Below, piece after piece: positions 1,641 to 37,319 of a stretch of 64,000 nt of DNA. The translations under genes were made by a program, and so were the position numbers. Position 1 is the stretch's first letter, and each line of letters starts with the position of its first letter. The notes under the pieces are model-generated. The model had not been told where the DNA came from and did no database searches. It saw only the letters and a list, made by a program, of their open reading frames with translations. The stretch lies in the sequence record OQ603353.1, one strand, 5' to 3'.

Positions 1641-2621
1641 TCAGTCGTCCAAGCTCTCGAAGAGATCCGCGAGGTTGGCTCGGCTGACCACCCGGACCAG
1701 CTGGTCCTGCTGGATGAGGGCGTTAGTGAACACCGGATTGCCTTGGCGATTGCGGCGCACTTCGTACATGATCTTGAAGTTGTCCCACCGGACTGCCCTG
1801 CCTTGCGTCTTGATGCCCCGGTCAGCCTCGATCACAAGGGCTCGCGTGTTGGCACTGCTGTCCGTCCACTTGACCTCCACCACGCAGCCCGGTTGCACGT
1901 CTACAAACTTGACCCCGATCGGATAGCCCCCGTTGACCTTCACGTTGTTCATCTTGAAGGCCGTGTTGGAGTGGTGCACAATGTAGTCAGCGTTGAAGTG
2001 CTTGGTCCGGGGCTTGCGTACCTCAAAGTGGTCCGGGTCATCAAGCATGAAGCCAACCACGTCTGCCGCAATGTAGGCAGTGACGTAATCCACGTCAGGA
2101 GCCGACTCGTCCAGTGTGCCAACTTGGTGGCAGATGACGCCTCCGATCCGAACCTCGCGGCGCGAATCAAGGATGACGGCAAAGGAACCGTCGCCTTGAA
2201 GGAGGGTGAACGCGTCCCGCAGGCGACGGATGACCGGCGTGGTGTCATGAAGCATTTCCTTGCCACTCCGCTTCCACTCCTTGATGAACTTCTCCGAAGG
2301 GGTCAGCGGAGCCTTGGGCAGCTTGGCGACCGTGGCCGATTGGGTCGGCATCTGCTCCGGGTGCAGGGTAAAGACGACGAGGAACGCGTAGTTGGAGGCG
2401 ATCACTTCGACCGCCTTGACCTTCTCCTTGCGACGGCGCATGACGCGCAGGACCGTCTTACGCACTGCCGCCTTATCCGTGATGGTGTGGGGGAAGAAGA
2501 TCCGAATCTCATTCTGCTTGTGCAGGGTGGTCTGTCGGACGCCCTTCAACGGCAGGTGGAAAGCCTCGCACAGGTCGGACTTGATGAAGGTGTGATTGAA
2601 GCCGGTGATTGCGTTGCTCAT
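1641..2621 (-). CDS. Hypothetical early protein (326 aa)
   Basis: Long ORF with GAAGGA RBS before ATG 2621; first gene after a sigma70-type promoter. No family recognised. Confidence 0.75.
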   Translation of the reverse strand: MSNAITGFNHTFIKSDLCEAFHLPLKGVRQTTLHKQNEIRIFFPHTITDKAAVRKTVLRVMRRRKEKVKAVEVIASNYAFLVVFTLHPEQMPTQSATVAKLPKAPLTPSEKFIKEWKRSGKEMLHDTTPVIRRLRDAFTLLQGDGSFAVILDSRREVRIGGVICHQVGTLDESAPDVDYVTAYIAADVVGFMLDDPDHFEVRKPRTKHFNADYIVHHSNTAFKMNNVKVNGGYPIGVKFVDVQPGCVVEVKWTDSSANTRALVIEADRGIKTQGRAVRWDNFKIMYEVRRNRQGNPVFTNALIQQDQLVRVVSRANLADLFESLDD

Positions 2622-2658
2622 GTGTGATCCTTCATTGGTCGGAGTGTTCCGGGAAATT

Positions 2659-2805
2659 TGCCAAGTGTGCTTGGCGAATCTGGCGTAGCGTGCAGGCACA
2701 GGGCATGACTCTACACCACTATCATACACCACCCCTAGCCGGGTGTCAAACCACCCCTGTCAGCCGTTCAGGTTCCGTTCAGGTTCGATTTGGGCACACT
2801 TGGCA
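2659..2805 (-). repeat. Early-promoter cassette copy 1 (inverted arms, GTTCAG iterations, leader)
   Basis: Shares CCACCCCTG, GCCGTTCAGGTTC and the GTGCCTG...CCAAGCACACTT leader with the copies at 17.3, 26.8 and 60.9 kb. Confidence 0.7.
2721..2749 (-). promoter_or_regulatory. Sigma70-type promoter
   Basis: TTGACA-17 bp-TATGAT on the minus strand. Confidence 0.85.
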
Positions 2806-2812
2806 GAATCTC

Positions 2813-3244
2813 TTATTCCGCAATCTCCATTTCTAGGCGTTCCTGCCACGTCTTCGGGCGGAGGGTCAGGGAGTGTGACCAGTGGCCTAGCCTCATTCGT
2901 GCCACCTCGTTAGCACCACACCCGTAAGGCACAGGCAGCGAGTTGACCCATTGGTGGAATCCCTGGGACGACTTGGCTGACTTGCCTGCCAGCTGCCTTG
3001 CCGTGAGATTGATTCCGGCGTTGAATGGCAGTGGGCAAATCCGGGTGCGATTGATGTGGTCAAGTAGCACAGTCGCAGGCATTGTCTCAACGCAATTCTG
3101 GCATGGTCGGAATCCTGTACCCACGAACTCTTCTGGAATCTGCTCCGTTTCGCACCAGCCCTCCATGCGACTGAATGCACGCACGCAGCAACTCGGATAG
3201 CCAAACCACAAGCCAAACAGAACGTACTGAGTAGACAATTCCAT
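2813..3244 (-). CDS. Conserved Cys-containing phage hypothetical protein
   Basis: GLWFGYPSCCVRAF and GTGFRPCQNC motifs, recalled from a common phage hypothetical family. Confidence 0.7.
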   Translation of the reverse strand: MELSTQYVLFGLWFGYPSCCVRAFSRMEGWCETEQIPEEFVGTGFRPCQNCVETMPATVLLDHINRTRICPLPFNAGINLTARQLAGKSAKSSQGFHQWVNSLPVPYGCGANEVARMRLGHWSHSLTLRPKTWQERLEMEIAE

Positions 3245-3267
3245 TTCGGTTCCCCTAGGTAGTGGCC

Positions 3268-4776
3268 TCAGATTGAGGCCACCATTGTATCAATGTCAGC
3301 CACGATCTTGTCGGCTGGCTTCTTGAGCCACTTATCCAGCTGAGTCAGGAATGCCTTCGTCTCCTTGATCTTCTCCACAAGCTTCTCGGCTTCCAGAGCC
3401 TTCAAGCTGCGAATCTGACGACTCAGGATCGTGTCCACCTGCTCGGCCGTGATCTTGAGGCCCTTCATCAACACCTCTTCGGTGTTCTTCGCTTTCAGCG
3501 CCTTGACGATCAAGTCGATGTTCTTGCATGCCAGCAGCATCAGTTCCTGCAACGCCAACTGCTCTTGCGTCTTGCCCTTCCGATAATTCAGGGCCTTGAC
3601 CTCAAGGTCGATGCGCCACTTGGTCCACTTCTTGAAGAAGTCCAGCACGCTGGTCTGCAACAGTTCAGCTGACGGCGTTTCGGTCTCGTAGTCGAAGCTC
3701 TTTTCGATGGCGTTGATTCGGAAGCTGCATCGCTTGGAGAAGTGCTTCTCGATCACTTCAAGCGCCTTGGCCTCAACCATCCGAACACCAATGTCCTGCT
3801 TGAGAACCACTTGAATCAGGAAGGGGTCTTTCCGACTCGTCTCATCCGTACAGGACTTGACACGATCATCCTCAGCGACTCGCCCGATCAGCTTCTCCAC
3901 GTCAGTCTGCGGAGGAATGGACGTGATGTTGATCGTCCTATTCTTGGCGTCGATGGTGTAGTCCGAAGTGACGATGGCACGGCCAGCACCAGTGGACAGC
4001 AGCTGGCGCCACTCCTTCCGGATTTCCTTCTGCTCGTTGCTGCCCTTGTTCAGGGTGCAGGAAGTGGAGCCATGACGGGCGTAGTTGATCTTGAGCGCCT
4101 TGCTGCAATCCTTCACGTCGATGGGCTGCTTCCGAAGGGCCTTCTTCGTCAGTTCGATGACGCCCTTCATGCCAAAGGCAGGCACCCAACCCGCCGTGCC
4201 CACCGCGATGTTGCCCGAACTACCATTCAACAGCAGGTTCGGCAGCAGCGACGGGAGGATCATTGGCTCTTGATCCTTACCATCATAGTTCGGCACCATG
4301 TCCGAAACTTCAAGGTGGTCGGCCGAGAAGAAGACGTTGTAGCCATACTTACTCAACTTCAACTCGGTGTATCGCATCGCCGCAGCTTCGTCCGTCATCG
4401 AACCAAAGTTGCCTTGGCCGATGAAGTACGGTTCCGAAGCATTCACCATCTGCACCACCGAGCCATAGGCTGCGGTGTCACCGTGCGGATGGTACTTACC
4501 GATCACGTCACCAACCAGTCGCGCAGACTTCTTGGTGCCACCGCTCGGAGCCATGCCCATCTTGTACGCCGCGTAGAGGATACGGCGCTGCACAGGCAGC
4601 AGCCCATCGCGGTAGTCCGGGAAGGCACGATCCTCAATGACCGCACGGCCATAGGTGAACATGCACTCGTCGCCATGGGTGGCCAAGTCAATATCGACTA
4701 CCACGTTGTTGCCCGAAGCCTTGACCTTACCCGACTTCACTTTCTTGCCTTTCACTTTCTTGGCTACCTTAGCCAT
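3268..4776 (-). CDS. gyrA: Type IIA topoisomerase subunit A (GyrA/ParC-like, no C-terminal pinwheel)
   Basis: RAFPDYRDGLLPVQRRIL, KSARLVGDVIGKYHPHGD, AAAMRYTE (catalytic Tyr); 502 aa. Confidence 0.95.
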   Translation of the reverse strand: MAKVAKKVKGKKVKSGKVKASGNNVVVDIDLATHGDECMFTYGRAVIEDRAFPDYRDGLLPVQRRILYAAYKMGMAPSGGTKKSARLVGDVIGKYHPHGDTAAYGSVVQMVNASEPYFIGQGNFGSMTDEAAAMRYTELKLSKYGYNVFFSADHLEVSDMVPNYDGKDQEPMILPSLLPNLLLNGSSGNIAVGTAGWVPAFGMKGVIELTKKALRKQPIDVKDCSKALKINYARHGSTSCTLNKGSNEQKEIRKEWRQLLSTGAGRAIVTSDYTIDAKNRTINITSIPPQTDVEKLIGRVAEDDRVKSCTDETSRKDPFLIQVVLKQDIGVRMVEAKALEVIEKHFSKRCSFRINAIEKSFDYETETPSAELLQTSVLDFFKKWTKWRIDLEVKALNYRKGKTQEQLALQELMLLACKNIDLIVKALKAKNTEEVLMKGLKITAEQVDTILSRQIRSLKALEAEKLVEKIKETKAFLTQLDKWLKKPADKIVADIDTMVASI

Positions 4777-4975
4777 CGTTACGTGCTCCCAAATGGCTCA
4801 TGGCGAGATACCCGAATGGGTATCCCTCCGTCTCGTGATACATGCAAGCCGCGTTGACTCGGAACTCGCTGCCATCAGTGAAGGTCAGTTGGACAGCCTT
4901 TAGCTCGCCGTCCTCCCGAAACTCTTCCGCCTTGGCAATCGTCTTGCCTGCCAGCAGTGCTTGAATGTCCATCAC
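4769..4975 (-). CDS. Small hypothetical protein
   Basis: Fills the gap between the topoisomerase subunits, with overlaps on both sides. Confidence 0.6.
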   Translation of the reverse strand: MMDIQALLAGKTIAKAEEFREDGELKAVQLTFTDGSEFRVNAACMYHETEGYPFGYLAMSHLGARNDG

Positions 4976-6864
4976 GGAATCCCCAGCAGGCGTTTTCTGG
5001 CGGTCACGTCGTCGGCCATCAGCAACGTAAACCGGGAGAGCGACTTTGCATCCTTGAGCGTGATGCGCTTGAGCTTACGGGTGGTGGCATCGAACGCTGC
5101 CTCCCGCAGCATTTCCGGAGCCGCCTCACCCCACCCCTTGAGGTGGTTGACCTTGTTGCGGTCTGCGCCCTTCGGCATCTTGGCCCACAGTTCCTTACGC
5201 GACTTCGCCATGTAATAGGTCTTGGTCTTGGCGTCGTAGTAGGTATACTCGGGGCTGTCCACGGTGTAGATCAGGCCACGCTCGAACACACCCGGCACAT
5301 ACTTGACCAGCAGGGCGATCACAAGCGTTTCGATGTGGCGACCGTCAACGTCCGCGTCGGTCAGCATAATCATCTTGCCAGTACGCAGGTGGTCAAGCGG
5401 ATTCTTCTTGGTCGGATCGAAGCCCAGCGCACGCAGGATGAACAACACTTCGTCACTGTTGAAGGCCGCGTTAATGTCCTTCTGCTTCATGACATTCAAA
5501 ATCTTGCCGCGCAACGGCAGGATTTCCTGATGCGTCTTATCGCGGGCCTTCTTCGCCGTGCCGCCTGCCGAGTCACCTTCCACCAAGAACGTCTCACGCT
5601 TATGCGGAGCGCAGTTGGCGCTGACGAACTTGGCAGGCATGTTGTTGCCCTTCTTCTTGCCCGAGTTCAGCGCAGCGATGGCCTTCTTTGAGGCAGTGAA
5701 CTCCGCCTTAGCCCCACGCACAGCCGCTGCCTTCTCGCACAGCGTCTTGGCCAGAGTCTTGTTTTGTGCGAAGAATTCATCCAGCTTCTTCTGCAACGGC
5801 GTGGGCAGCATGTCGTTGACCCGGCCGTCAACCAGCTGTGCCTTGTCCTGACTGCTGAATCGGGGAGCATCGAGTTTGGCGTTGATGATGCCTACTGCAC
5901 CTTCGAGCACGTCGTCCTTTCGGAAGGACTGCTTGCTGTTGGCGTACTTGACGATGGCATTGTAGAGACACTGTTTCAGAATGTCTACATGCAGACCGCC
6001 ATTCTTGTTGTGGATCGAGTTGGTGTATGCCTCGATGTTGTCGCCTTCGGCATCTGTGAACGCCAGCGCAATCTCAGCAGGGAACCCCTTCTCGGTCAGG
6101 ACGAACGGCTTGCCAGTGACAGTAGCCTTGAGCTTCTTGCACTGCGCACCGAGGAAGTCCTTGACACCATCCTTGAACTTCCACTGCTTCTTCTTGCCAT
6201 CAACGATGAGCGTGACTTCCAGCCCGGCGTTGAGGTAAGCAGCAAGTTCACACCACTGCTCGAAGTAGTCGATCGGAATCTTCGAGCCCTTGTCGAAATA
6301 CTTGAGGTCCGGAATCCAGTGGATCGCCGTGCCCTTCTTGACCTTGACCCCGAACGGCAACTTGGGGGCAGTCGCCTTCTTGACCGGCTTCTTCTCCACG
6401 CCATCGGCGTACTGAGTATGCCACCACACCTTGTCTCGGAAGGTGTGAACCTCAAAGTGCTTCGACAGCGCATTGGTAGCCTTGAGGCCAACGCCGTGCG
6501 TACCACCCGCGTTCTCGTAAGCACCCTTGTCAAACTTTGCGCCTGCATGCAGACGACTGACCAGCGACTTGAGTGCCGACTCCTTGACCTTGCGGCCTTC
6601 GATTTCCAGCGTGTGAGGCTTGACTGGCATACCACCTGCCGAGTCAATGGTCCAGAATTTCCACGCCTTCGTGTCGATCAACAGGGTGACAGAAGCGCCA
6701 CGGCCTGCCTTGAATTCGTCAACGATGTTGTCCAGCGGCTCGCGGCCGATGGTGCCGATACCCGTTGAATCTGTAAGGCCGATATACATACCGGCTTTGG
6801 CCTGAACGGCTTTCAAGCCAATCAGGACTTTTACTTGCTTCTCTGAATAGCTGGCTTTCGCCAC
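4972..6864 (-). CDS. gyrB: Type IIA topoisomerase subunit B (GyrB/ParE-like)
   Basis: GHKL motifs (EPLDNIVDE, GGTHGVG) and TOPRIM motifs (EGDSAGG, PLRGKILN, TDADVDG). Start moved to GTG 6864 with GAGGA RBS. Confidence 0.95.
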   Translation of the reverse strand: MAKASYSEKQVKVLIGLKAVQAKAGMYIGLTDSTGIGTIGREPLDNIVDEFKAGRGASVTLLIDTKAWKFWTIDSAGGMPVKPHTLEIEGRKVKESALKSLVSRLHAGAKFDKGAYENAGGTHGVGLKATNALSKHFEVHTFRDKVWWHTQYADGVEKKPVKKATAPKLPFGVKVKKGTAIHWIPDLKYFDKGSKIPIDYFEQWCELAAYLNAGLEVTLIVDGKKKQWKFKDGVKDFLGAQCKKLKATVTGKPFVLTEKGFPAEIALAFTDAEGDNIEAYTNSIHNKNGGLHVDILKQCLYNAIVKYANSKQSFRKDDVLEGAVGIINAKLDAPRFSSQDKAQLVDGRVNDMLPTPLQKKLDEFFAQNKTLAKTLCEKAAAVRGAKAEFTASKKAIAALNSGKKKGNNMPAKFVSANCAPHKRETFLVEGDSAGGTAKKARDKTHQEILPLRGKILNVMKQKDINAAFNSDEVLFILRALGFDPTKKNPLDHLRTGKMIMLTDADVDGRHIETLVIALLVKYVPGVFERGLIYTVDSPEYTYYDAKTKTYYMAKSRKELWAKMPKGADRNKVNHLKGWGEAAPEMLREAAFDATTRKLKRITLKDAKSLSRFTLLMADDVTARKRLLGIP

Positions 6865-6956: not shown

Positions 6957-7643
6957 TTACTCCGCTGCGCTCCCCTGCTGGCGACGCAGCCACTCCTGCC
7001 GTTCCACGATTACGGGATGCACCATATCCCCTTCCACAAGTTCGTAGATATGGTACACCCACACCGCGTCGATGGCCTTGCCATCCGAACGGTTCTCCGC
7101 CGTCTCGTCATAGAGATACTCGAACTGCGGTTCACGTGTACCAAGGTACGCGCCCCACTTGTGCCAGCGCCAACCACCATTCGGCTCCTGCTCGTCCCTG
7201 CGCATTTCAACCATGCTGACGCAGAAGTACCGATTCTCCAGAGCGTCGATGATGGGGAACAGTTCAAACAGCTGTTCCGGGGTGTCCACCACACCATAGC
7301 AGTTGAGGTAGCGCCTCTTCGGTTCTCCGTCCTCTCCCACGTTGTCGTAGATGCCTGCGTTGTGCTCAGGGAACTCCGGATAGTCAAGATCGAACTTGCG
7401 CTTGCCGTCCTGCTTGGAGCGGTTGATTTCATGATCGAAGTTGAGGTCGCCCGTGAACACACCCGGCAGCGTTGCGTGCTCGTACACGAATGGGGCACGG
7501 TAGGAACCATCCTCCAGCTTCTGGAACTGATCCAGATGCTCATGGAAACTTTCGTTGTGGGGATTGGCACCGATGGGGTACTGGTCGCGCAGACCCTGCA
7601 ACCATTCGGCGGTATAGGTGATGAGCTTCGGAGTAACGAGCAT
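6957..7643 (-). CDS. Conserved phage hypothetical protein
   Basis: GGWRWHKWGAYLG...PQFEYLYDE motif; AAAGGA RBS before ATG 7643. Confidence 0.75.
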   Translation of the reverse strand: MLVTPKLITYTAEWLQGLRDQYPIGANPHNESFHEHLDQFQKLEDGSYRAPFVYEHATLPGVFTGDLNFDHEINRSKQDGKRKFDLDYPEFPEHNAGIYDNVGEDGEPKRRYLNCYGVVDTPEQLFELFPIIDALENRYFCVSMVEMRRDEQEPNGGWRWHKWGAYLGTREPQFEYLYDETAENRSDGKAIDAVWVYHIYELVEGDMVHPVIVERQEWLRRQQGSAAE

Positions 7644-7653
7644 TTCAATTCCT

Positions 7654-7845
7654 TTATCGTAGTTGTGCAGTGTGCTCAATGCGTTCACGCAGCTTGTCGG
7701 TGTCGAACGTCTGCTCCATCAGCAGCTTGTTGACCCAAAGCTGGTACTCTGTCCGACCGTCTACGTCACGCTTCTTGATGACGTAGTTCTTGCCGTTGTG
7801 CGGCGCCACCTGTTCGGTGACAATCTCCCATGTTACTCCTGCCAT
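7654..7845 (-). CDS. Small hypothetical protein
   Basis: Directly downstream of the E1 gene and overlapping it. Confidence 0.5.
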   Translation of the reverse strand: MAGVTWEIVTEQVAPHNGKNYVIKKRDVDGRTEYQLWVNKLLMEQTFDTDKLRERIEHTAQLR

Positions 7846-8516
7846 GTTACGCTGTGCATTCCCCATTCTTCACCCACGCTTGTCACCACCGTGTTAGGTG
7901 TCGGGCGGCCCATGACGAAATTCATGAACTGCCAGATCATCTGTGACGCGACAATCTGCGCCGTAGCTCCGACACTGAGGGTTGCCCCACAAGCCGCGCG
8001 CTCTACATTGGCGTCGTCGTCATCGAACAGGCCACCAATGTAATTAGTGCGTTGCCATTCCTTGCTGCGATCAAGCAGGAACGAGATTGCATCCCGGGCT
8101 CCCATGCGTCCATCCAGAAACGCACCACCCTCACACGGCAAGTAGTTCTCCGCGAAGGCACGGCGCGATGCCATGTTGTCCACGCATACGAACACGTATG
8201 GAGTGGCCTCAAACCTGGGCTTATTGAGGCGGCGAGGACACGCGCCCACTCGCGTGTCCGAAACTTGACGCAGGCGATCCACCAAGGCAACAGCCTTGTT
8301 CGCCCCCACGTCATCGGGACCGTACAGGCATTGGTTCGGCAGGTTGTGGGATTCCACCACGTCATCATCATAGACAACGAACGGTACACCGATCTTCGAC
8401 AACTGCAACGCTACCGCGCTGCCCAAGGCTCCTGCCCCGACAACCACCGCAGGCGTGCGCTCAGTGGCCTTACTTTTGCTCAGGTCGAAGATACCGGTCA
8501 ATCGAATTTGATCCAT
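7833..8516 (-). CDS. ThiF/MoeB/E1-like adenylyltransferase
   Basis: VVGAGALG nucleotide-binding loop, YDDDVVESHNLPNQ, NKAVAL, VFVCVDN, LDGRMG, and a C-terminal AACG candidate catalytic Cys. Confidence 0.9.
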   Translation of the reverse strand: MDQIRLTGIFDLSKSKATERTPAVVVGAGALGSAVALQLSKIGVPFVVYDDDVVESHNLPNQCLYGPDDVGANKAVALVDRLRQVSDTRVGACPRRLNKPRFEATPYVFVCVDNMASRRAFAENYLPCEGGAFLDGRMGARDAISFLLDRSKEWQRTNYIGGLFDDDDANVERAACGATLSVGATAQIVASQMIWQFMNFVMGRPTPNTVVTSVGEEWGMHSVTWQE

Positions 8517-8528
8517 CGTTAGTGCTCC

Positions 8529-11207
8529 TTAAAGTTCGTCATCCTCAATATCATCGTCGCACTCGCAATCTTCTGGAGTGCACAAGCAGCGGTTGCAACA
8601 CTTGCAGGGAGAGGACTCACAGTCCGAGCAGCAACTGCACCGAGTACGCTTGCACGTACCACAACAGCCACATTCTTCGCTCGGCTCATGTTTGCAACAT
8701 ACGCACTTGTGTTGCAGCATGTTACAGCCGGGGCAACTTTCGTTGCTGATGTTGTTCAACTTGAAATAACCTTCGGTTACATGGACCAACTCTTCAAGCC
8801 TCAGCACTGTCTCCCGAGTAACAGGAATCCTGTGCCAGTCTAGTTCCGCATTGGACACCTGTGCAACGATGTTGTCGAACTTCGGATTGCTAGTCTGACT
8901 CTTCAACGCAAGCAACTTCGAGCCTGATGCTCCCATGTTTTGATGGGAACCCTTCGACCTCCTGCGTGTACCAATTGGTGACAGGGAGGGCGCCATGTTT
9001 CCGATGAGGTCTTTCCACGGAGAAACCGCCGTGTACTCAGCGTCGGGCTTATCTCCATACGTCTTGGCCCATGCCCTCACGTACAGATCGTTGCGATCCG
9101 GCGTAGCCAAGAAGTCGTAAAGCAGCTGCAACCTGTAACGCAAGTTACCTACAACCGAATTGGAAGCGGTGGAAATGTGGTCCTCCAACTCGCTATGGAA
9201 CGAACCTAAGCACAGGGAGCCATGCGACTCTTGGCTGCTCGGGACAGCCATGTGTGGATGGATGCGCATACGCAGCCGGGGCTCAGAGTATTCCAATTCG
9301 TAGGCAAGCGGTGTTGCAATGTTGCGAATGGCGAGGTCGGTATTGACTAGAGACAGTGCAATCTGATACTGACCAATGTAGAACTGGCTTGGCACCGCCC
9401 GGTTATCCGTTTCGTCCTCATCGTCAAAGCCTGACACTTCCGGCGGCTGGTAGTACAGGTCATTCGTTTGGACGATGACCGTGCCCGAGGGCAGCAACTC
9501 CACATGCTCAATCCACGTGTAGCTATTGAGTTCTGCCAGTGCGAGGTTCACGTCCTCCGCAGTGAAAGAACAGATGCGACGAATCTGCTCCTGCAACTCG
9601 GCCTTACGTGCACGCAAAGTCAGCAGCGACTTTGTGGTTTCCGTCAAGTCTCGTTCCACGTCCTCGTAATCATGCAGGAGCGCCGTCGCCCGCTTAATCT
9701 GAATCCCGGTAACCAAGGAATCCTGAGTGGATACAACGTCCGTAGTCAGCGAGTTAAGCAGGGCGTGATACGTGAGGGCAGGAGAAGCCGACAGGAAGAT
9801 GTTACCTACCCGCACCACCGTAGGTGCGGTGCCCTTACGGAAGCGTTCCCACTTCACCACGCGGCTGGGGAAGTCACGCGCCTCGGGGTAGCCCGATATG
9901 TAACCAAGGAAGCGATCCTCGTAGGGGTCTAACGCAGAGTCGAAGACTTCCGCGATGGCCTTCCATCCAAGGTTGACCAGCATGGATTCAGCCTTGGCTT
10001 TCGTTTCAGCGGTGACATTGAAGTGGATGCCCTCGATGTGAGCGGGTCCATACAGCCTGTACTGCGTAGGCTCTGTCACTTGGAAGCCGAACGTCCTGCG
10101 CACTGCTATGCGACGCTCCTGCTCTTTACGATCGGCCTCAAACTCGCGCTGGCTGCGCCCTGTGTCGAAGCTGAGGCGTTCCATCCAGTTGATGAGTTGT
10201 GTCTCGTTCTCCATAGCCTCCAGAGGAATGACCAGCGGCATGCGTCCGACGCACGCCATCGCGTACATGTGGACCTGATCCTCCTTCATCATTACCTGTT
10301 CGACGCTAAAATGAATTTGGCTTGTTGCAGCCCGCCGACTGAACACGTCGTTTGCCACGGCGCTTTGCAGATTGCGGAAGTCAATCTCGTACAGTGGAAT
10401 GGAGTCTGTGTTGCCATTCACGAACGCCTGCTCACGGGTGGACTTGTAGTTGTCCGGATCATCGTCGCGGGCACGATCTTGGGACAGCAGGATGAAGAAG
10501 AACGCCCACACATGGTACACGTCAGGGAACGTGTTGGAATCCATCAAATCCCACTTGCAATCTTGCACAGGGAATACGTCGTTACCGAAGCACTGCTCAG
10601 TCATGGCTCGGGCGGCTACGCCAAGGTCGTTCGTGACGTGACCTGTACTGAACTCAGTTACCGAGTTGTATTCGTGTGCGTTGGAACCGGACATGTAGGC
10701 AGAGCGCACCGTGTTAGGCATGATGCGCTCGTGGCCTGCTGCTTCCTTTGCAATCACCCAAGAGCTAGGAATGACAGCAGGCTGGTTGAATGCTGGGTAT
10801 AGATCAGGGGAGTCCTTGAGGTAGGCAGCCACTGTTGGCACAGCCATCCCGAGGTACTTGTAGAATATCTCCTGCATTTCAGGAGAGCGGCGATTACGGA
10901 ACAGAGTCGCCATGTTCTCCCGCAGGGAGTCCACGATGAAAAGAATGCAGGCGCGAAGCGTGGCAGTATCCTGAACCTTGATGTAGGGCCTTTCTAGCAA
11001 AGGCACGTCTTCGGCCGCTACGTCAAGAGAGACACCCTTGCAGCAATCTCGGCACCGAACGTTCTCAGAGTACCTGTTCTCGGTGTCGTGGCACTCGCAG
11101 TCACAATCGGAGGTGCAGCACATGCACTCGTCATCATCGCAGTAGTCCCACAACTGAACAACCTTCTGCTTCGCTGCTGCTTTGGGGAACCTTCCGTTAC
11201 TCATCAT
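8529..11207 (-). CDS. Large protein with a prokaryotic E2-like (UBC-fold) domain, coiled coil and Cys-rich termini
   Basis: GQYQIAL...IRN...RIHPHM...GSLCLGSF...LQLLYDFL pattern (Cys codon 9210-9212) preceded by a heptad coiled coil; lies between Ubl and E1. Confidence 0.65.
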   Translation of the reverse strand: MMSNGRFPKAAAKQKVVQLWDYCDDDECMCCTSDCDCECHDTENRYSENVRCRDCCKGVSLDVAAEDVPLLERPYIKVQDTATLRACILFIVDSLRENMATLFRNRRSPEMQEIFYKYLGMAVPTVAAYLKDSPDLYPAFNQPAVIPSSWVIAKEAAGHERIMPNTVRSAYMSGSNAHEYNSVTEFSTGHVTNDLGVAARAMTEQCFGNDVFPVQDCKWDLMDSNTFPDVYHVWAFFFILLSQDRARDDDPDNYKSTREQAFVNGNTDSIPLYEIDFRNLQSAVANDVFSRRAATSQIHFSVEQVMMKEDQVHMYAMACVGRMPLVIPLEAMENETQLINWMERLSFDTGRSQREFEADRKEQERRIAVRRTFGFQVTEPTQYRLYGPAHIEGIHFNVTAETKAKAESMLVNLGWKAIAEVFDSALDPYEDRFLGYISGYPEARDFPSRVVKWERFRKGTAPTVVRVGNIFLSASPALTYHALLNSLTTDVVSTQDSLVTGIQIKRATALLHDYEDVERDLTETTKSLLTLRARKAELQEQIRRICSFTAEDVNLALAELNSYTWIEHVELLPSGTVIVQTNDLYYQPPEVSGFDDEDETDNRAVPSQFYIGQYQIALSLVNTDLAIRNIATPLAYELEYSEPRLRMRIHPHMAVPSSQESHGSLCLGSFHSELEDHISTASNSVVGNLRYRLQLLYDFLATPDRNDLYVRAWAKTYGDKPDAEYTAVSPWKDLIGNMAPSLSPIGTRRRSKGSHQNMGASGSKLLALKSQTSNPKFDNIVAQVSNAELDWHRIPVTRETVLRLEELVHVTEGYFKLNNISNESCPGCNMLQHKCVCCKHEPSEECGCCGTCKRTRCSCCSDCESSPCKCCNRCLCTPEDCECDDDIEDDEL

Positions 11208-11237
11208 CGTCGCCTTTTCGGTAGTCCTGAATGTACG

Positions 11238-11268
11238 AAAGGCCCGAGCGTCTTTCGACGCCCGAGCC
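11238..11268 (-). terminator. Hairpin / weak intrinsic terminator between Ubl and E2
   Basis: 12-bp stem GGCUCGGGCGUC/GACGCUCGGGCC with GAAA tetraloop, followed by UUUCG. Confidence 0.65.
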
Positions 11269-11286
11269 TAGGTGGTACGTGTAGCT

Positions 11287-11712
11287 TTAGCCGCCGCTCG
11301 CCTTGGCGATAGCGGTCAGCTTGAGGTTTTCCGACAGCTTGCGGTCAAGCGCAACCGGCTTACCCTTGTCGTCCTGATACTTGAAGTTCTCGTAGCCAGT
11401 ACCGCCGCCAGCCTTGATGGCCGAACGCACGGTCGAGCCTGCGGTGGCGGAGCCGGTGACGGTCAGCTTGCCAGTGACCTGCACGGTGTAGGTGGCGACT
11501 GCCACTTCCGCCGCCGGAACGTCCGTCACTTCCGTGGTCGGACTGGCAGCTGCGGTAGCTTCTGCCTGACCTTCACTACCTGCTGCCGGGACACTGACGT
11601 TTCCATCAGTCGCGGTGCTGGTTTCCGAATTGGTTCCAACGGTGACACTACCTTCGGCAGCGACGTTGGTGGCTTCTTCGTTGTTCTGGACGTTCTTTTC
11701 ATTGGTGTTCAT
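11287..11712 (-). CDS. Ubiquitin-like (beta-grasp) protein with C-terminal GG
   Basis: Low-complexity T/A/E N-terminal half, then TYTVQVTG-KLTVTG-STVRSAIKA-FKYQD-GKPVALDRKL-LKLTAIAKASGG-stop; adjacent to E2 and E1. Confidence 0.75.
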   Translation of the reverse strand: MNTNEKNVQNNEEATNVAAEGSVTVGTNSETSTATDGNVSVPAAGSEGQAEATAAASPTTEVTDVPAAEVAVATYTVQVTGKLTVTGSATAGSTVRSAIKAGGGTGYENFKYQDDKGKPVALDRKLSENLKLTAIAKASGG

Positions 11713-11797: not shown

Positions 11798-12238
11798 TTA
11801 CTTGACCTTCTTCTTGCCCTTCTTGCCCTTCTTCTTCTCGCCCTTCTCCGGCTTCTCAGCCTTGCCGCCCTTCGACTTCTTCTTGGCAGCCTCTTCGGCC
11901 TCACCCACGAACGAAACGTTCGTGTTGGCGACGACGTAGGTATCACCGTTCTCGGCCACGAACGTGGTGAAGTTGCCCTTCACTTCGATGGTGTCCGGCG
12001 CCACCTTGATGTTGGCCAGTTCCGCACGCGGATTCACGACCGCGATTTCCACCGAACCGTCTTCACCAACAGCGGCGTACTGCACGTTGGTGCGCGGGAT
12101 GACAGCCTGCTCGAACTTGGACGAACGCGGGCGCTTGTAGTGGACGGTGATCTGATTCGCGTCTTCCGCGACCACGGTGCCTTCGATGGTGCGGATGGCC
12201 GGCCCGTACAGGGTGGCGGTATAAATCTGCTTCGACAT
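11798..12238 (-). CDS. Beta-rich protein with Lys-rich tail; paralogue of 12988-13767
   Basis: TATLYGPAIRTIEGTVV...ITVHYKRPRSSKFEQAVIP aligns with TVTIQHPGIVEVYGEVI...ITLRRRIHRSRGKFEDVTYP. Confidence 0.75.
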   Translation of the reverse strand: MSKQIYTATLYGPAIRTIEGTVVAEDANQITVHYKRPRSSKFEQAVIPRTNVQYAAVGEDGSVEIAVVNPRAELANIKVAPDTIEVKGNFTTFVAENGDTYVVANTNVSFVGEAEEAAKKKSKGGKAEKPEKGEKKKGKKGKKKVK

Positions 12239-12987: not shown

Positions 12988-13767
12988 TCACTCGTCTTCG
13001 TATTCGTCTTCATCTTCGTCATGCTCTTCCACTTCCACTTCTTGTTCGGATTCTTCTTCGTCTTCTTCATCCTCTTCGTCGTCTTCATCGTCATCGTCAT
13101 ATACAGGCGGCAACGGCTTTGCGGGCTTCACTACCTTCTGTACTGGCTTGGTAGGGAAGGGAGGCGCATCATCTTCTTCCTCGTCCTCGGTATCGTCCTC
13201 TTCCTCAACAGGAGGTGCAGGCGGCGCTACCTTCTTCTTGCGTACCGGACGTTCTTCCTCTTCATCCTCATCCTCTTCCTCGCGGCGCTTCTTGTACGTC
13301 CGCTCGGGAATATCTTCCGCACTACGAATCTGCACAACACTGGTGATGCTAGGATGGCACAAATGAATTGTACCGTCTTCTTCATCAGTCAGTACGTACA
13401 TGCCACCCTGGACTTCAAAGTCGCTGACCTCAAACACGTCATACTCATGGTTCGGGTCATCAATCAGCAGGGTTGCCTGGGGTTCGTTGATGTAGAACGC
13501 TGCCTTGACTGCTGACAGCGGATAGGTCACGTCTTCAAACTTGCCACGGGACCGATGGATGCGGCGACGCAGGGTAATGTGAACGTCACTACGGCTAATC
13601 ACCTCACCGTAGACTTCAACGATTCCCGGATGCTGAATGGTTACAGTAAAGGGAATCTTCTTGACCGGCTTCTTGTGGGCCTTTGCCTTTTCCAACTTTT
13701 TCTTGGTCTTGACCTTTTCCGGCACAGCCTTCTTGGTCTTGGTAGGCGCAGGCTTGGTTTTGCTCAT
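12988..13767 (-). CDS. Beta-rich protein with basic N-terminus and long acidic tail; paralogue of 11798-12238
   Basis: See the paralogue alignment; C-terminal poly-D/E. Confidence 0.75.
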   Translation of the reverse strand: MSKTKPAPTKTKKAVPEKVKTKKKLEKAKAHKKPVKKIPFTVTIQHPGIVEVYGEVISRSDVHITLRRRIHRSRGKFEDVTYPLSAVKAAFYINEPQATLLIDDPNHEYDVFEVSDFEVQGGMYVLTDEEDGTIHLCHPSITSVVQIRSAEDIPERTYKKRREEEDEDEEEERPVRKKKVAPPAPPVEEEDDTEDEEEDDAPPFPTKPVQKVVKPAKPLPPVYDDDDEDDEEDEEDEEESEQEVEVEEHDEDEDEYEDE

Positions 13768-33789: not shown

Positions 33790-35416
33790 GCTTCAACCTC
33801 TTGTAGTAGTAGAATGCGTCCGTGCTATCAAGGTCATTACCAAACGAATCTGTCTTGTCATCGTAGTAGCCTACGACAGGCAGGCTCTGCTCAAACCCGA
33901 GGGCACGATACAGGCGCTTGGCAGGATCGTTGGTAACCGAAGTGTGCAAGGCAACGCCATCAAACTCATTCGACAGCAGCGCGAACGCCTTTTGCATCAT
34001 CTGCCTACCGACACCGTGGCCACGCATCTGCTCAGTGACGTACACAAGGTCGATATAGGCGTTCGGATTAAATTGGTTGAAAACAATGTAGCCGATGGGG
34101 TTCCGATACCGCCACCTTGCGACAAGAATCCGAACCCTTCCGCCCTCACGTGCCGTCATCAGGATGTGCGACAGCTGATTGATCGTCTCAAGATCGAAGG
34201 TGTTGAGGTCGTCTTCCCCGAACAGTTCAGAAGTCAGCTTGAGGAACTCAGCCAGCTTGATCTCCGACACGTCGATCTGATCGTTCCACTTGCTGTCCAG
34301 CTTCTTCAACTCCCATCCCTTACCACGGATGTATACCGGAGGTTCAAAGCCGTACTCAGCGCAGTAGTTGCCTGCGCAGAAATCCGAATCCACCACAGCG
34401 TAGTCGAGGGGAACGATGGGCAGTTCAAAGCCTACCGGAATGAACTTTTCCTTGTAGGTACCTTCGGTGTCTAGGTGGTAATACTTTACGTCGAGCGGCA
34501 GTTCTTCCGCAATGAATCGGATCGCCTCGTAGATGGCGAGGAAGCCGATGCGACGCTTCTTGTACTCTTCGTAGCTCACACCCGGCACGGCCAGCTTGTC
34601 CACGTACACAGCGCCACGCACTTCACCGATGTTGGTGCAGATGAGGCGGTTGTCCGCGTCGTAGATATTGAGGACCAACGCATTACGGTCCTCAAGGTTA
34701 TGCAGCATGTTGTTGATGTGGATGATGTTGGTGACGTTATCATCCGAGGTGTAGGTCCACCGCTCAAGGTTGGCGGTGTAGTTCTTGTGGAAGTCAGCAG
34801 ACTTCATCACGTCGCGCAGGCTAACCTGCTCCACCCGAACGCCTTCGTTCAGGCGCATCACAGCACGATAGTTCTCCCGGTTCTTCTTCGACAGGGAGGC
34901 AACGTAGCTTTCCATCGATTCGGGGATGTAGAGGCCATAGGACTTGTCATCCTGATAGCCATACTCACGCGGGTAGATCGGGAAGTAGTTGACGATCATG
35001 CAGGGCGGCAGCTGCTCAAACACGTCATCCAGAAATTCTGGCAGCGCCGGTGGGACGCTGACTTCAAAGTAGCTCGCACCAAACAGGTCAAACTTGGCTT
35101 GCTTGAGGGGATCACGGGTGTTCCACAGATCGTGCAGGATCGTATGGCCTACCATCTGCCCGGTGTTCAGGTCATACACATTCGTAATCACCAGCACGCT
35201 TTGATGCACAAAGTTTGCCAGCAGTACCGAAATGTATTCGTCGTAGGTGGGCAGCAAGTCACCAAAGATGCCCACACCATCAAGTGCTTTGACCCGATGC
35301 AGGTACTGCTCAAACTTTGCCTTCGGGATGAGCTTCACAACGTCAGCGGTGGGTGCGACAACATGCTGCTCGCCGAACACCCGATCAGTGCGAAACTCGC
35401 GCAGTCCGTAATTCAT
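33779..35416 (-). CDS. FemAB-like GNAT paralogue 3 fused to a RimI-like GNAT
   Basis: MESYVASLSKKNRENYR; C-terminal YIDLVYVTEQMRGHGVGRQMM...NDPAKRLYRALGF (acetyl-CoA motifs A and B). Confidence 0.8.
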   Translation of the reverse strand: MNYGLREFRTDRVFGEQHVVAPTADVVKLIPKAKFEQYLHRVKALDGVGIFGDLLPTYDEYISVLLANFVHQSVLVITNVYDLNTGQMVGHTILHDLWNTRDPLKQAKFDLFGASYFEVSVPPALPEFLDDVFEQLPPCMIVNYFPIYPREYGYQDDKSYGLYIPESMESYVASLSKKNRENYRAVMRLNEGVRVEQVSLRDVMKSADFHKNYTANLERWTYTSDDNVTNIIHINNMLHNLEDRNALVLNIYDADNRLICTNIGEVRGAVYVDKLAVPGVSYEEYKKRRIGFLAIYEAIRFIAEELPLDVKYYHLDTEGTYKEKFIPVGFELPIVPLDYAVVDSDFCAGNYCAEYGFEPPVYIRGKGWELKKLDSKWNDQIDVSEIKLAEFLKLTSELFGEDDLNTFDLETINQLSHILMTAREGGRVRILVARWRYRNPIGYIVFNQFNPNAYIDLVYVTEQMRGHGVGRQMMQKAFALLSNEFDGVALHTSVTNDPAKRLYRALGFEQSLPVVGYYDDKTDSFGNDLDSTDAFYYYKRLKHED

Positions 35417-36246
35417 TTCTTCGTTCTCAGGTAACGTGCATGGTTGAATACTTGCGTGGCGTCGAGGGCCTGAATGCCATCAAACAAAGGAAGGTTGGAC
35501 CCAAGGGCATTCGTAGCTGCGTCCTTCTTGATGCGCTCCACCCAATCGCGGAAGTCGAGGCCATCCATATCCATAGCGCCGAGGGCACCGAGGTGTGGGG
35601 CAAACGTTTCCATATCGACAAGGCGCTTGCCCGCCTGACCGGCCCACAGGTCCAGCGCGACCATTGCAGCCTTGGATGCGTTCGGGGTCAGGGAGAACAT
35701 GCTGTCTACGCTAATGTAAGTGGGGAAGTTTAGGCCGAACAGGCCACCTACGATTTCGCCTTCTGCGTTGAGCACTGTGACCGAGTACGCTTTACGTTCC
35801 TTACCATAGTGGAGTGCCTTGTATGCACGCTGAGTAGGAGTATCGAGCCATTGCGTGTACTCGTCTGCATCCTCTTCCTTATCTTCCGGACGCTCAACCG
35901 TAGCGCAGTGGTGAATCACCTTGTCGAAGCCGACGTTCAGCTGGTAGTTCCAACCCTGCTTGCGAATGAACTGCTCGGTAGTCTTGGAAACGTGCAGGCC
36001 ACCAACAGGCAGCACGGCTCGGCGACCGCTGACTTCCCAAATCCATTCGGATTCATCCTCTGTGCCAACGAACCCCATCGGGTGCGCCTGCGCCCTGTCT
36101 GCCAAACCATACAGAAGGTGCGGCGTCATTTCTACGGTCCAGCAGTAGTCGTCATCATCCAGCGGGAAGTGCTCTGCATTGATGTGGCGAACGTCGTTCA
36201 AGTCGTACAGCTTGAACGGAATCTTAGTGTCGCTCGAAGTGTCCAT
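35413..36246 (-). CDS. aat: Leucyl/phenylalanyl-tRNA-protein transferase homologue
   Basis: RAVL..GGLHVSK, FDKVIHHCA, AYKALH, VGGLFG, DSMFS...NASKAA, LVDME...HLGALGA follow the E. coli Aat pattern. Confidence 0.85.
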   Translation of the reverse strand: MDTSSDTKIPFKLYDLNDVRHINAEHFPLDDDDYCWTVEMTPHLLYGLADRAQAHPMGFVGTEDESEWIWEVSGRRAVLPVGGLHVSKTTEQFIRKQGWNYQLNVGFDKVIHHCATVERPEDKEEDADEYTQWLDTPTQRAYKALHYGKERKAYSVTVLNAEGEIVGGLFGLNFPTYISVDSMFSLTPNASKAAMVALDLWAGQAGKRLVDMETFAPHLGALGAMDMDGLDFRDWVERIKKDAATNALGSNLPLFDGIQALDATQVFNHARYLRTKK

Positions 36247-36946: not shown

Positions 36947-36972
36947 TGGAATCTCCTTGAGGATACAGTCTA

Positions 36973-36981
36973 TATTTACAG
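36973..36981 (-). promoter_or_regulatory. CTGTAAATA phage promoter-like motif
   Basis: Between a terminator and the modification operon. Confidence 0.65.
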
Positions 36982-36994
36982 GATCGGGAAACGC

Positions 36995-37024
36995 AAAAGG
37001 GGCAGCCGCTAGGCCACCCCCTTT
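36995..37024 (-). terminator. Intrinsic terminator
   Basis: GGGGUGGCC-UAGC-GGCUGCCCC then UUUUG. Confidence 0.8.
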
Positions 37025-37033
37025 CGTGTGTTC

Positions 37034-37309: not shown

Positions 37310-37319
37310 GCTTGCTCCT

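Follow-up and report, generated by a model that had tools for sequence, protein, structure and literature searches.

A predicted ubiquitin-like tagging gene module encoded by a Xanthomonas jumbo phage

Bacterial systems of E1, E2 and ubiquitin-like (Ubl) proteins act against phage (PMC10557695, PMC10097602, PMC11601596), and the question raised by the present locus is whether phages, and not only their hosts, carry such machinery to attach protein tags during infection. Three co-oriented genes on the minus strand of the 227-kb Xanthomonas phage Ep026, relatives of which occur in many other phages, suggest that they do; together they encode a small protein ending in Gly-Gly, a putative activating enzyme, and a very large protein with a highly divergent domain of apparent E2 type. 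The analysis was made on a 64,000-nucleotide stretch of record OQ603353.1 (hereafter, the window), and all three open reading frames (ORFs) were confirmed to exist exactly as originally predicted. The features of the locus, in order of transcription, are as follows.

11287..11712, minus strand: Ubl gene (141 aa), ending ...LKLTAIAKASGG-stop; residues 1-70 are a low-complexity, acidic T/A/E/S-rich extension (pI 4.05), residues 72-141 (nt 11290-11499) are the predicted beta-grasp domain, and the terminal Gly-Gly codons (nt 11290-11295) are followed directly by the stop codon.
11234..11269, minus strand: GC-rich stem-loop (11240-11269; 13-bp stem, 4-nt loop) followed by a T-rich run (11234-11239), within the 79-nt spacer between the Ubl gene and the large gene.
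8529..11207, minus strand: large multidomain protein (892 aa), here called E2L, with an N-terminal Cys cluster (10 Cys, nt 11037-11141), a poorly conserved N-domain, an invariant EGIHFN motif (residues 392-397, nt 10017-10034), a coiled coil (residues 495-562, nt 9522-9725), the UBC-like domain, a C-terminal Cys cluster (20 Cys between residues 825 and 883, nt 8553-8741), and an acidic tail.
8973..9521, minus strand: UBC(E2)-like domain of E2L (residues 563-745), with HPH (residues 650-652) at nt 9252-9260, the putative thioester Cys666 at nt 9210-9212, 13 residues lying between them, and FLATPDRND (equivalent to E2 'LL..PNP.DP') at nt 9087-9113.
7833..8516, minus strand: minimal E1 (ThiF-family adenylation domain, 227 aa), starting 12 nt after the E2L stop, with GAGALG at nt 8421-8438, DDDVVESHNLPNQ at nt 8331-8369, K74 at nt 8295-8297, CVDNM (Mg-binding Asp113) at nt 8172-8186, and the invariant Cys176 at nt 7989-7991.

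The identity of the small protein is well supported by structure prediction. AlphaFold2 (AF2), supplied with an 11-sequence alignment, folded its C-terminal domain as a beta-grasp (pLDDT 83.8) with a strand-strand-helix-strand-strand-strand order, and a Foldseek search of the PDB returned only Ubl/beta-grasp structures: the Dsk2 UBL, the bacterial Bil Ubl (8tyx/8tyz), SUMO, MoaD, ISG15, and SAMP1, with probabilities of 0.9-1.0 and TM scores of 0.5-0.64. The core F.D..GK.V.LDRKL is conserved in relatives, as is the GG end. The latter is unlikely to reflect chance; only 4 of 328 annotated CDS in PhiXhv-15, a 99.7%-identical phage, end in GG, and yet the small protein next to this E1 family ends in GG in all 11 loci examined. 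A twelfth Ubl-family protein (P0012), known without its locus, also ends in GG.

The 227-aa protein was likewise assigned with some certainty as an E1. It matches Pfam ThiF at 74.7 bits against a cut-off of 28.1 (8e-21), PADLOC models of Cap2-type E1-E2 proteins down to 4e-12, and BilD at 1e-5. Its family profile, when compared with the PDB, gave ThiF (2e-18) and Uba1 (3e-14), and also MccB, Uba4, MoeB, UBA5, UBA3, Cap2, and BubCD. The GxGxxG motif, D50, K74, D113, and Cys176 (within AACG) are invariant, D52 is also present, and no CxxC occurs. The original prediction had considered the ATP site to be intact, but there is one deviation: the Arg of the E1 motif SNLxRQ is Asn61, which is invariant in the family. 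In addition, the C-terminal half of the protein, including Cys176, does not align to any solved E1, and its role is thus inferred.

Assignment of the third protein as an E2 is only moderately supported. The HPH...Cys motif follows a long helix (residues 495-562) predicted with a pLDDT of 80-93, with which a weak DivIC hit and coiled-coil hits in the PDB agree. An exhaustive phmmer search found four distant relatives matching residues 376-740, and in an alignment of eight sequences, E392, G393, H395, N397, Y610, G612, Q615, I616, R628, N629, H650, P651, H652, C666, F699, L700, D707, V710, and W731 are invariant at about 20% overall identity; relatives have the canonical E2 spacing, HPH-x7-C. 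Comparison of this eight-sequence family with a verified UBC profile using hhalign gave a score of 23.2 (P 0.0075), with HPH placed on HPN and Cys on Cys, and 0 of 300 column shuffles reached that score. A profile of 20 sequences aligned in register to canonical UBC enzymes at YxG.[FY], HPH/HPN, Cys, and FLQT.N..D/LL..PNP.DP, with a probability of 76% and an E value of 2.2e-5; none of 200 shuffles reached the real score (maximum of 16.7 against 37.2). The window family matched relatives of the JAB type (described below) with a probability of 99% (E 6e-18), while these JAB-type relatives alone matched UBC with a probability of 88.5% (E 2.7e-6). However, the window family alone reaches a probability of only 5-9% against UBC, and hence the link to E2 enzymes is partly transitive. 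The order of elements predicted by AF2, viz. a four-strand meander, the HPH loop, the Cys, and three helices, fits UBC, but the model has a pLDDT of 69 overall and below 60 around the catalytic loop. Foldseek searches with this 370-residue model found no significant UBC match in the PDB or BFVD (best E values of 1.2 and 0.12), an RWD domain and Ube2W appearing only at E values of about 5, and no curated E2 model (Pfam UQ_con, Prok-E2) matched any family member, even at E<=10 on the trimmed domain or E<=1 on ten full-length relatives.

The three genes form a conserved unit. An exhaustive HMMER search together with inspection of genomic context identified the same order of Ubl-GG, large protein, and E1 in seven further divergent phage contigs (about 20-25% identity), all of which keep the GG end, the HPH/Cys motif, and the E1 cysteine; three more loci place a GG-ended Ubl after the E1. 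In all eight loci of the window type, E2L and E1 abut or overlap, with spacings of -13 to +13 nt. RNAfold of the spacer revealed the hairpin listed above, and an equivalent hairpin with a T-rich tail sits in the 71-93-nt spacer of all eight loci, conserved in position and structure but not in sequence. It is likely a leaky terminator or 3' stabiliser that sets Ubl in excess over the enzymes, although a simple terminator scan did not flag it because the T run is too short.

What the original prediction did not recognize is that this module is one branch of a much larger, uncatalogued phage cassette family, in which the same E2L domain and an E1 are paired with a JAB protein carrying HxHx7SxxD. 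The wider cassette also occurs in crAss-like and Flavobacterium phages; sub-threshold Prok-JAB hits were obtained with 5 of the 9 IMG/VR JAB-candidate proteins scanned, and with the two JAB-candidate proteins of the crAss-like and FpV4 loci. This combination is the classic gene set of prokaryotic Ub systems. The branch represented by Ep026 is without JAB; no JAB motif was found in any ORF of 60 aa or more in the window, nor in the whole genome of PhiXhv-15, which also revealed no thiamine or Moco genes. The annotated 'GTP 3',8-cyclase' of the latter phage is QueE-like.

Taken together, the core of the original prediction, a phage-encoded conjugation module of Ubl-GG, E2-like protein, and E1 with no sulfur-pathway partners and no need for a maturation protease, survived each of the analyses that could be run, and on this purely computational evidence it is favored with moderate confidence. 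The most likely function is ATP-dependent conjugation of the Ubl to unknown targets, the genes being transcribed as one unit within the early/replication gene array. In the cascade proposed, the Ubl would be made ready to use, its Gly-Gly end already exposed, and probably in excess given the hairpin following its gene. The E1, probably a homodimer, would bind ATP, adenylate the terminal Gly, and may then hold the Ubl on Cys176, prior to its passage as a thioester to Cys666 of E2L, whose gene is translationally coupled to that of the E1. The remaining parts of E2L (N-domain, EG.H.N domain, coiled coil, and the two Cys-rich clusters resembling metal-binding sites) probably choose the substrate, such that the protein would act as an E2/E3 hybrid, and the Ubl would then be transferred to a lysine on host or phage proteins. 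Each of these chemical steps, together with the hybrid activity and the expression ratio, is inferred, and no target, E3, or deconjugating enzyme was identified.

The alternative that competes most closely, while still considered unlikely, is an E2-independent system, as with archaeal SAMP/UbaA, Thermus TtuB/TtuC or Urm1/Uba4, in which the E1 activates a Ubl that is then conjugated or thiocarboxylated directly; E2L would be the substrate, a scaffold, or an adaptor, and its HPH...C a structural or metal-binding motif. Consistent with this notion, the Ubl and E1 identifications are much stronger than that of the E2, Foldseek and Pfam provide no E2 signal, the third position of HPH varies (H, C, Y), the first His is Asn in the sequence labelled L018, and E2L is rich in Cys clusters. 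On the other hand, the in-register match to UBC has clean shuffle controls, the Cys is strictly conserved in all 20 aligned family members that carry the HP[H]...C motif and in five further relatives detected by HMM, the gene is tightly coupled to that of the E1 in every locus, and the same domain co-occurs with JAB and E1 in many phages, which is the pattern of Cap2/Cap3 and of the operons described by Iyer and colleagues in 2006 (PMC1779556). A sulfur-carrier system is more doubtful; here the GG protein would be a ThiS/MoaD-like carrier whose thiocarboxylate donates sulfur for thio-modification of phage DNA, tRNA, or a cofactor, with the Cys666 protein serving as a persulfide relay or sulfur-inserting enzyme. 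The best sequence hits of the E1 are indeed ThiF and MoeB, MoaD is among the structural neighbours of the Ubl, and the phage makes modified DNA bases through other genes (QueE/FolE/QueD). Nevertheless, neither annotation nor the scans run revealed rhodanese, cysteine desulfurase, ThiG/ThiH, MoaE, TtuA, or similar genes in the window or in the genome of PhiXhv-15, the E1 scores far below the equivalog cut-offs (54.7 bits against 275 for ThiF, and 25.9 against 376 for MoeB), and it has neither a Zn CxxC nor a rhodanese domain. Moreover, long disordered or duplicated N-terminal extensions on the carrier are typical of conjugated Ubls, not of ThiS/MoaD (PMC11601603).

The original prediction suggested that the module may tag host or own proteins, or act as a decoy against Bil/CBASS, and none of the present data favors one of these possibilities. 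Dedicated counter-defence, a sub-case of the conjugation model, would involve neutralising host Ubl-based immunity (Bil, type II CBASS, Bub) by competing for or modifying host components, or by pre-emptively capping the phage lysines targeted by the host system. The anti-phage action of the bacterial systems and the resemblance of the E1 to the Cap2 and BilD E1 domains in PADLOC are compatible with this, but no evidence is specific to it and as a dedicated role it appears improbable: the module sits among replication genes (ligase, topoisomerase II) and not in an obvious anti-defence island, the related cassette of crAss-like and Flavobacterium phages also lies in the replication module, and conservation across hosts argues for a core infection function. 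Least likely is peptide or other non-Ubl adenylation chemistry, either MccB/PaaA-like C-terminal modification of a ribosomal peptide or TcdA-like nucleoside chemistry, with the GG protein as precursor of a small-molecule product. Whereas MccB, PaaA, and TcdA are among the E1 profile hits, the substrate is a predicted folded beta-grasp with a conserved GG end and not a short peptide ending in Asn, and no export, immunity, or tailoring genes are present.

Among known systems, the bacterial Bil systems (BilA Ubl, BilB E2, BilC JAB, BilD E1; PMC10557695) also have separate Ubl, E2, and E1 genes, a beta-grasp Ubl with a Gly end, and an expected Cys-based chemistry; the Bil Ubl is among the top structural matches of the phage Ubl, BilD gives a weak hit to the E1, and Bil type II Ubls likewise have variable N-terminal tails and tandem beta-grasp domains (PMC11601603). 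The phage module differs in being encoded by lytic phages and not within host defence islands, in lacking a JAB in this branch, in its E1 of half the size (227 aa against a 453-position BilD model), and in its E2-like domain, which is embedded in a 700-950-aa protein, carries HPH instead of HPN, and is not recognised by the PADLOC BilB model or Pfam E2 models. With type II CBASS (PMC10097602; PDB 7to3), the E1 domain of Cap2 is the best PADLOC match (N-terminal part), E2 and E1 act as one unit (fused in Cap2, translationally coupled here), and the broader phage cassette also carries a JAB, as in Cap3, next to the E1. However, there is no CD-NTase or effector in the phage module, a dedicated free Ubl is present rather than the C-terminus of a cyclase, and E2 and E1 are separate polypeptides, encoded in that order. 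The Bub (6E) operons (PMC11601596) also represent a diverged E1/E2/Ubl pathway found by context, and the BubCD E1 domain is a weak profile hit, but Bub works through Ser oxyesters and lacks catalytic cysteines, whereas the phage E2L and E1 both keep invariant cysteines and no BubE-type serine protease is present.

The operons predicted by Iyer, Burroughs and Aravind in 2006 (PMC1779556, Table 1 rows 6a-6d) share the gene vocabulary (E1-like protein without rhodanese, UBC-like protein with a conserved Cys, JAB, and Ubl with C-terminal Gly) and the logic of inference from context plus profile matches. Those operons are found in bacterial chromosomes, ICEs, and plasmids, and their E2 families either lack the HPN histidine or are fused to the E1; the only phage system described there is the lambda/T1 tail-assembly Ubl-JAB pair (TAPI/TAPK), which has no E1 or E2. 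Finally, the archaeal and bacterial E2-less systems (SAMP/UbaA, TtuB/TtuC, Urm1/Uba4) also combine a small beta-grasp protein ending in GG with a ThiF-like E1; SAMP1 and MoaD are structural neighbours of the phage Ubl, and UbaA and Uba4 are profile hits of its E1. Those systems also serve sulfur transfer and have no E2, whereas a Cys-bearing, UBC-like partner is always adjacent in the phage loci, and no sulfur-pathway genes were found by annotation or by the scans run.

The window was found to be 100% identical to Xanthomonas phage Ep026 (227 kb) and 98-99.7% identical to Erwinia phage Ep032 and the Xanthomonas hortorum jumbo myophages PhiXhv-12, -15 and -16. The three adjacent ORFs of the original prediction are real and lie on the minus strand; in PhiXhv-15 they are annotated as "hypothetical", "hypothetical" and "thiamine biosynthesis protein", respectively, and are located in a long minus-strand array between a DNA ligase and type II topoisomerase subunits. 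The residue-level details of that prediction were also confirmed: HPH occupies residues 650-652 of the 892-aa protein (E2L) and is separated by 13 residues from Cys666, while the 227-aa protein (E1) possesses five Cys residues and no CxxC. The features of the locus are:

12988-13767, minus strand: a 259-aa ORF with a Lys-rich N-terminus and an Asp/Glu-rich C-terminal tail.
11798-12238, minus strand: a 146-aa ORF ending in a Lys-rich tail.
11287-11712, minus strand: the 141-aa protein (Ubl), ending KASGG-stop.
11240-11269 and 11234-11239, minus strand: a GC-rich hairpin and the T-rich run that follows it, respectively.
8529-11207, minus strand: the 892-aa protein, E2L.
11037-11141, minus strand: a cluster of 10 Cys near the N-terminus of E2L.
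10017-10034, minus strand: the E-G-x-H-x-N motif of E2L (residues 392-397).
9210-9212, minus strand: the codon for Cys666 of E2L.
8553-8741, minus strand: a cluster of 20 Cys between residues 825 and 883 of E2L.
7833-8516, minus strand: the 227-aa protein, E1.
6957-7688, minus strand: a 243-aa ORF, two genes downstream of E1, matching PHROG families of unknown function (phrog_12048, 1e-22; phrog_18298, 6e-17).

The two ORFs just upstream of the module, at 11798-12238 and 12988-13767, are weak paralogs of each other (BLASTP E 6e-5, 23% identity over 132 aa), and the same neighborhood is retained in L014, a locus syntenic with the window.

The 227-aa protein was recognized by the curated Pfam model of the E1/ThiF/MoeB adenylating superfamily (PF00899) over residues 10-209, with a score of 74.7 bits against a cut-off of 28.1 (E 8e-21), and it also matched the E1 parts of the CBASS Cap2-type and BilD models in PADLOC. 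A profile of eight family members hit ThiF (2e-18) and the active adenylation domain of Uba1 (3e-14), followed by MccB, PaaA, Uba4, MoeB, UBA5, UBA3, Cap2, TcdA, BubCD and ATG7. The GxGxxG motif (GAGALG in the window), D50/D52, N58, Q62, K74, D113, several Arg residues, and Cys176 within an [AS]CG motif are invariant; of these, GAGALG, D50, N58, Q62, K74 and D113 align to the ThiF residues, whereas the Arg of SNLxRQ is Asn61 in the whole family. Only the nucleotide-binding half of the protein aligns to solved E1s, none of which aligns beyond profile position about 141, and hence the equivalence of Cys176 to the crossover-loop cysteine (ThiF C184 or MoeB C187) is only inferred.

Scans of the Ubl and E2L against Pfam, PHROGs, PADLOC and NCBIfam gave nothing, and sequence searches against the PDB, with both single sequences and family profiles, returned only coiled-coil noise. 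The first 70 residues of the 141-aa protein are acidic and of low complexity (pI 4.05), while the last 70 are basic. Using an 11-sequence alignment, AlphaFold2 modeled the C-terminal 82 residues with a pLDDT of 83.8 and a strand-strand-helix-strand-strand-strand order. The top 50 Foldseek hits of this model in the PDB are nearly all Ubl or beta-grasp structures, including the Dsk2 UBL, the bacterial Bil Ubl in its DUB and E1-E2 complexes (8tyx, 8tyz), SUMO, MoaD, ISG15, ubiquitin and SAMP1; probabilities reached 1.0 with TM values of 0.5-0.64, although the E-values are modest (8e-3 and weaker). The original prediction of a beta-grasp-like domain was thus not contradicted by the predicted fold.

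Little was initially found concerning the relatives of the module. A word-indexed homology search with the 892-aa protein found only itself, tblastn against INPHARED found only five near-identical phages, and single-sequence pattern scans of IMG/VR found nothing. An exhaustive phmmer search of 1.8 billion representatives, however, identified four distant relatives of the 892-aa protein, with 20-26% identity and matching residues 376-740. Each is encoded on a phage-like contig, one of them 201 kb, and in each a small ORF lies upstream while a 220-244-aa ThiF gene follows immediately; all four small proteins end in GG-stop and share the core F.D..GK.V.LDRKL...L.L..K..GG. Profile searches added three more loci of the same order, these being L011 (a 236-kb contig), L012/L013 (which form one locus type) and L014, together with a further GG-ended Ubl (P0012). 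The GG-stop is present in the window and in all 11 other family members, and the gene lies within two genes of the E1 in all 11 loci whose context was fetched; by comparison, only 4 of 328 annotated CDS of PhiXhv-15 end in GG. Several of the Ubls have two beta-grasp domains or other N-terminal extensions, including a Lys-rich repeat in L011, and bacterial Bil and Bub Ubls are reported to vary in the same way (PMC11601603).

Across the eight loci, the invariant residues of the large protein are E392-G393-x-H395-x-N397, Y610, G612, Q615, I616, R628, N629, H650-P651-H652, C666, F699, L700, D707, V710 and W731. The E-G-x-H-x-N motif lies in a domain upstream of the coiled coil; it is conserved in all eight window-type large proteins and in one paralog of L018, a jumbo-phage contig, but is absent from the JAB-type relatives described below. 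HMMs of this domain and of the N-domain found no relatives in the JAB-type loci, and no fold or family could be assigned to the motif-bearing domain.

Whether the HPH...C domain represents an E2 was addressed in several ways. Relatives read IHPHSNTGGTICWGGY, which is the canonical E2 spacing (HPN-x7-C); the spacing is x7-x8 in most relatives, and the x13 of the window protein simply reflects a 6-residue insert. The AlphaFold2 model of residues 376-745 (pLDDT 69) presents a 68-residue helix, extra strands, a four-strand meander, the HPH loop, Cys666 and three helices, an order of elements that fits UBC, although the confidence of the model is modest. On the other hand, Foldseek of this 370-residue model gave no significant hit in the PDB or BFVD, an RWD domain and Ube2W appearing only at E about 5, and the curated E2 models (Pfam UQ_con, Prok-E2_A-E, RWD, UEV) gave no hit at E<=10 for the 8 trimmed domains nor at E<=1 for 10 full-length relatives. 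A reference profile of six canonical E2 cores was therefore built and verified as a UBC profile by its retrieval of 275 E2 chains from the PDB at E<1e-20.

When compared with this UBC profile by hhalign, the 8-sequence domain of the window family alone scored 23.2 (probability only 5-9%, being 5% with P 0.0075 in this comparison), but in register, with none of 300 shuffles reaching the real score (mean 12.3, max 22.7). The 20-sequence profile scored 37.2 (probability 76%, E 2.2e-5), with none of 200 shuffles reaching that value (max 16.7), while 12 JAB-type relatives alone scored 43.0 (88.5%, E 2.7e-6); the window family against the JAB-type relatives gave 115.1 (99%, E 5.9e-18). The 8-sequence alignment places HPH on HPN, Cys666 on the catalytic Cys, and FL.T...D.YV on LL..PNP.DP, and the 20-sequence alignment additionally places YxG.[FY]QI on Y.GG.F.L.I. 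The E2 homology is regarded as probable, but it is not proven structurally. A second HPH...C protein in PhiXhv-15 (35806-37569) was rejected as a paralog (hhalign probability 2%).

A search of IMG/VR with the E1 profile gave 28 loci. In the closest of these (L015, L016 and L018; contigs up to 238 kb), E2L is followed by E1 and then by a GG-ended Ubl, each recognized by the Ubl HMM at E 9e-17 to 3e-4. L018 has two tandem paralogs of the large protein (993-2831 and 2832-4664), both carrying a shortened NPHGS-C active-site loop, ahead of the E1 and the GG-ended Ubl. At least a dozen others (L017, L019-L022, L025, L027, L029-L031, L036 and L039) carry an HPH-x7-8-C protein of 350-600 aa, then a protein with the JAB motif HxHx7SxxD, and then the E1; the Prok-JAB model scored E 6e-5 to 6e-4, just below the cut-off, in 5 of the 9 IMG/VR JAB-candidate proteins scanned. 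The same arrangement, with HSH in place of HPH, occurs next to the primase and UDG genes of crAss-like phages (L003, bajarodcaudo virus 1, 2274-5570) and of Flavobacterium phage FpV4 (L004, 2494-5564). Direct BLASTP of E2L against the 433-aa crAss-like neighbor was not significant, and that protein has HSH, not HPH, and was left out of the profile. Variants of the motif (NPH, HPC, HPY) show that His-Pro and the Cys are the constants. No Ubl of the window's family was found in these JAB-type loci. Many E2L proteins end in CxxC-rich tails, and those following the E2-like domain in L027, L029, L031, L036, L039 and L014, like the extreme Cys clusters of the window protein, may be zinc-binding or RING-like modules. 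In 185,579 bacterial and archaeal genomes, the E1 probe returned only generic matches to the N-terminal Rossmann segment among the 80 loci kept, which were not inspected further.

The spacing of the genes is also conserved. In all eight window-type loci, E2L and E1 are -13 to +13 nt apart, whereas the spacer between the Ubl gene and E2L is 71-93 nt and holds a strong GC-rich hairpin followed by a T-rich run, located right after the Ubl stop codon. This element, found in the window and in the equivalent spacers of L005, L006, L007, L009, L011, L012 and L014, is conserved in position and structure but not in sequence. It looks like an attenuator or stabilizer that sets the ratio of Ubl to enzymes, and it suggests, by inference, that the Ubl is made in excess over a stoichiometric E2L:E1 pair.

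Given these observations, the best-supported mechanism, its chemical steps being inferred, is an ATP-dependent cascade in which a pre-matured Ubl would pass from the E1 to Cys666 of E2L and then to a lysine of unknown targets, with the extra domains of the large protein acting as the specificity (E3-like) part. The repeated location in replication modules hints at an early or middle infection function. The suggestion in the original prediction that the module serves in counter-defense is neither supported nor excluded. More tentatively, and somewhat less likely than not, tailed phages may run their own Ubl-conjugation pathway during infection, in which a phage-specific, previously uncatalogued E2 family (HPH...C) works with a minimal E1, using a ready-made GG-ended Ubl in jumbo phages and being paired with a JAB protease in crAss-like, Flavobacterium and many uncultured phages. 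E2L would then be a combined E2/E3 that covalently tags host or phage proteins, possibly replication-linked ones, to reprogram the cell, and "viral ubiquitylation" would be a widespread phage strategy rather than only a host defense.

The rival explanations considered are E2-independent conjugation, a sulfur-carrier system, a metal-binding rather than catalytic role for HPH/C, and MccB-like chemistry. The lack of recognition of E2L by curated E2 models, and of a significant Foldseek match, favors E2-independent conjugation, whereas the in-register profile match to UBC enzymes speaks against it; MccB is among the hits of the E1 profile. With respect to sulfur-carrier activation for thiamine or molybdopterin, the NCBIfam ThiF and MoeB equivalogs scored the E1 far below their cut-offs (54.7 bits against 275 and 25.9 against 376, respectively), and no ThiS/ThiG/ThiH or MoaD/MoaE/MoaA/MoaC partner genes appear in the window or in the PhiXhv-15 genome, either by annotation or by the scans run. 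The one annotation that could point to molybdopterin, a "GTP 3',8-cyclase" in PhiXhv-15, is QueE-like; with FolE and QueD (PV764602, 220018-220917, 222922-223602 and 18121-18585, all outside the window), it indicates a 7-deazaguanine (DNA modification) pathway. A radical-SAM gene that looks QueE-like by motif in L009 (3737-4576), and a weak Fer4_12 (radical-SAM) hit in L005, lie next to or near the Ubl/E2L/E1 module.

The kinds of component in this module are known. What is not described in the literature that could be searched, including the PhiXhv paper, two jumbo-phage overviews, and the Bil and Bub papers, is the phage origin of an E1/E2/Ubl set, the uncatalogued HPH-type E2 embedded in a giant protein, the minimal E1, the JAB-less, GG-exposed branch, and the link to a widespread phage E2L/JAB/E1 cassette. 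Here the chemistry would appear on the virus side, in a compact and conserved module whose probable E2 is so divergent that no curated library recognizes it. If active, the module would provide a tractable three-protein system for asking what a virus of bacteria gains by tagging proteins, add a new E2 lineage and a possible E2/E3 hybrid architecture to the evolutionary history of ubiquitin signaling, and correct the "thiamine biosynthesis protein" annotation that these E1s carry in the phage records seen here. The same phage also encodes, at 35413-36246 on the minus strand, a leucyl/phenylalanyl-tRNA-protein transferase (Pfam Leu_Phe_trans, E 1.9e-30, above the cut-off), the bacterial N-degron enzyme, and this second protein-fate-modifying activity hints at wider manipulation of protein fate.

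Among the known systems, Bil comprises a four-gene set (BilABCD) with a JAB deubiquitinase, BilC. PADLOC gave only a partial BilD hit (1e-5) for the E1 and nothing for the Ubl or E2L, and no JAB motif occurs in the window or in the whole PhiXhv-15 genome, where all pattern hits were in non-coding frames or unrelated genes. Type II CBASS involves an E2-E1 fusion protein, a JAB, and a CD-NTase whose C-terminus is conjugated; in the phage, E2L and E1 are separate genes, and no CD-NTase, effector or JAB was annotated or detected. The Bub pathway is characterized by serine (oxyester) catalytic residues, an E1 lacking a catalytic Cys, and the BubE serine protease (PMC11601596). No such protease was seen in the phage module, and its E2L and E1 both have invariant Cys residues.
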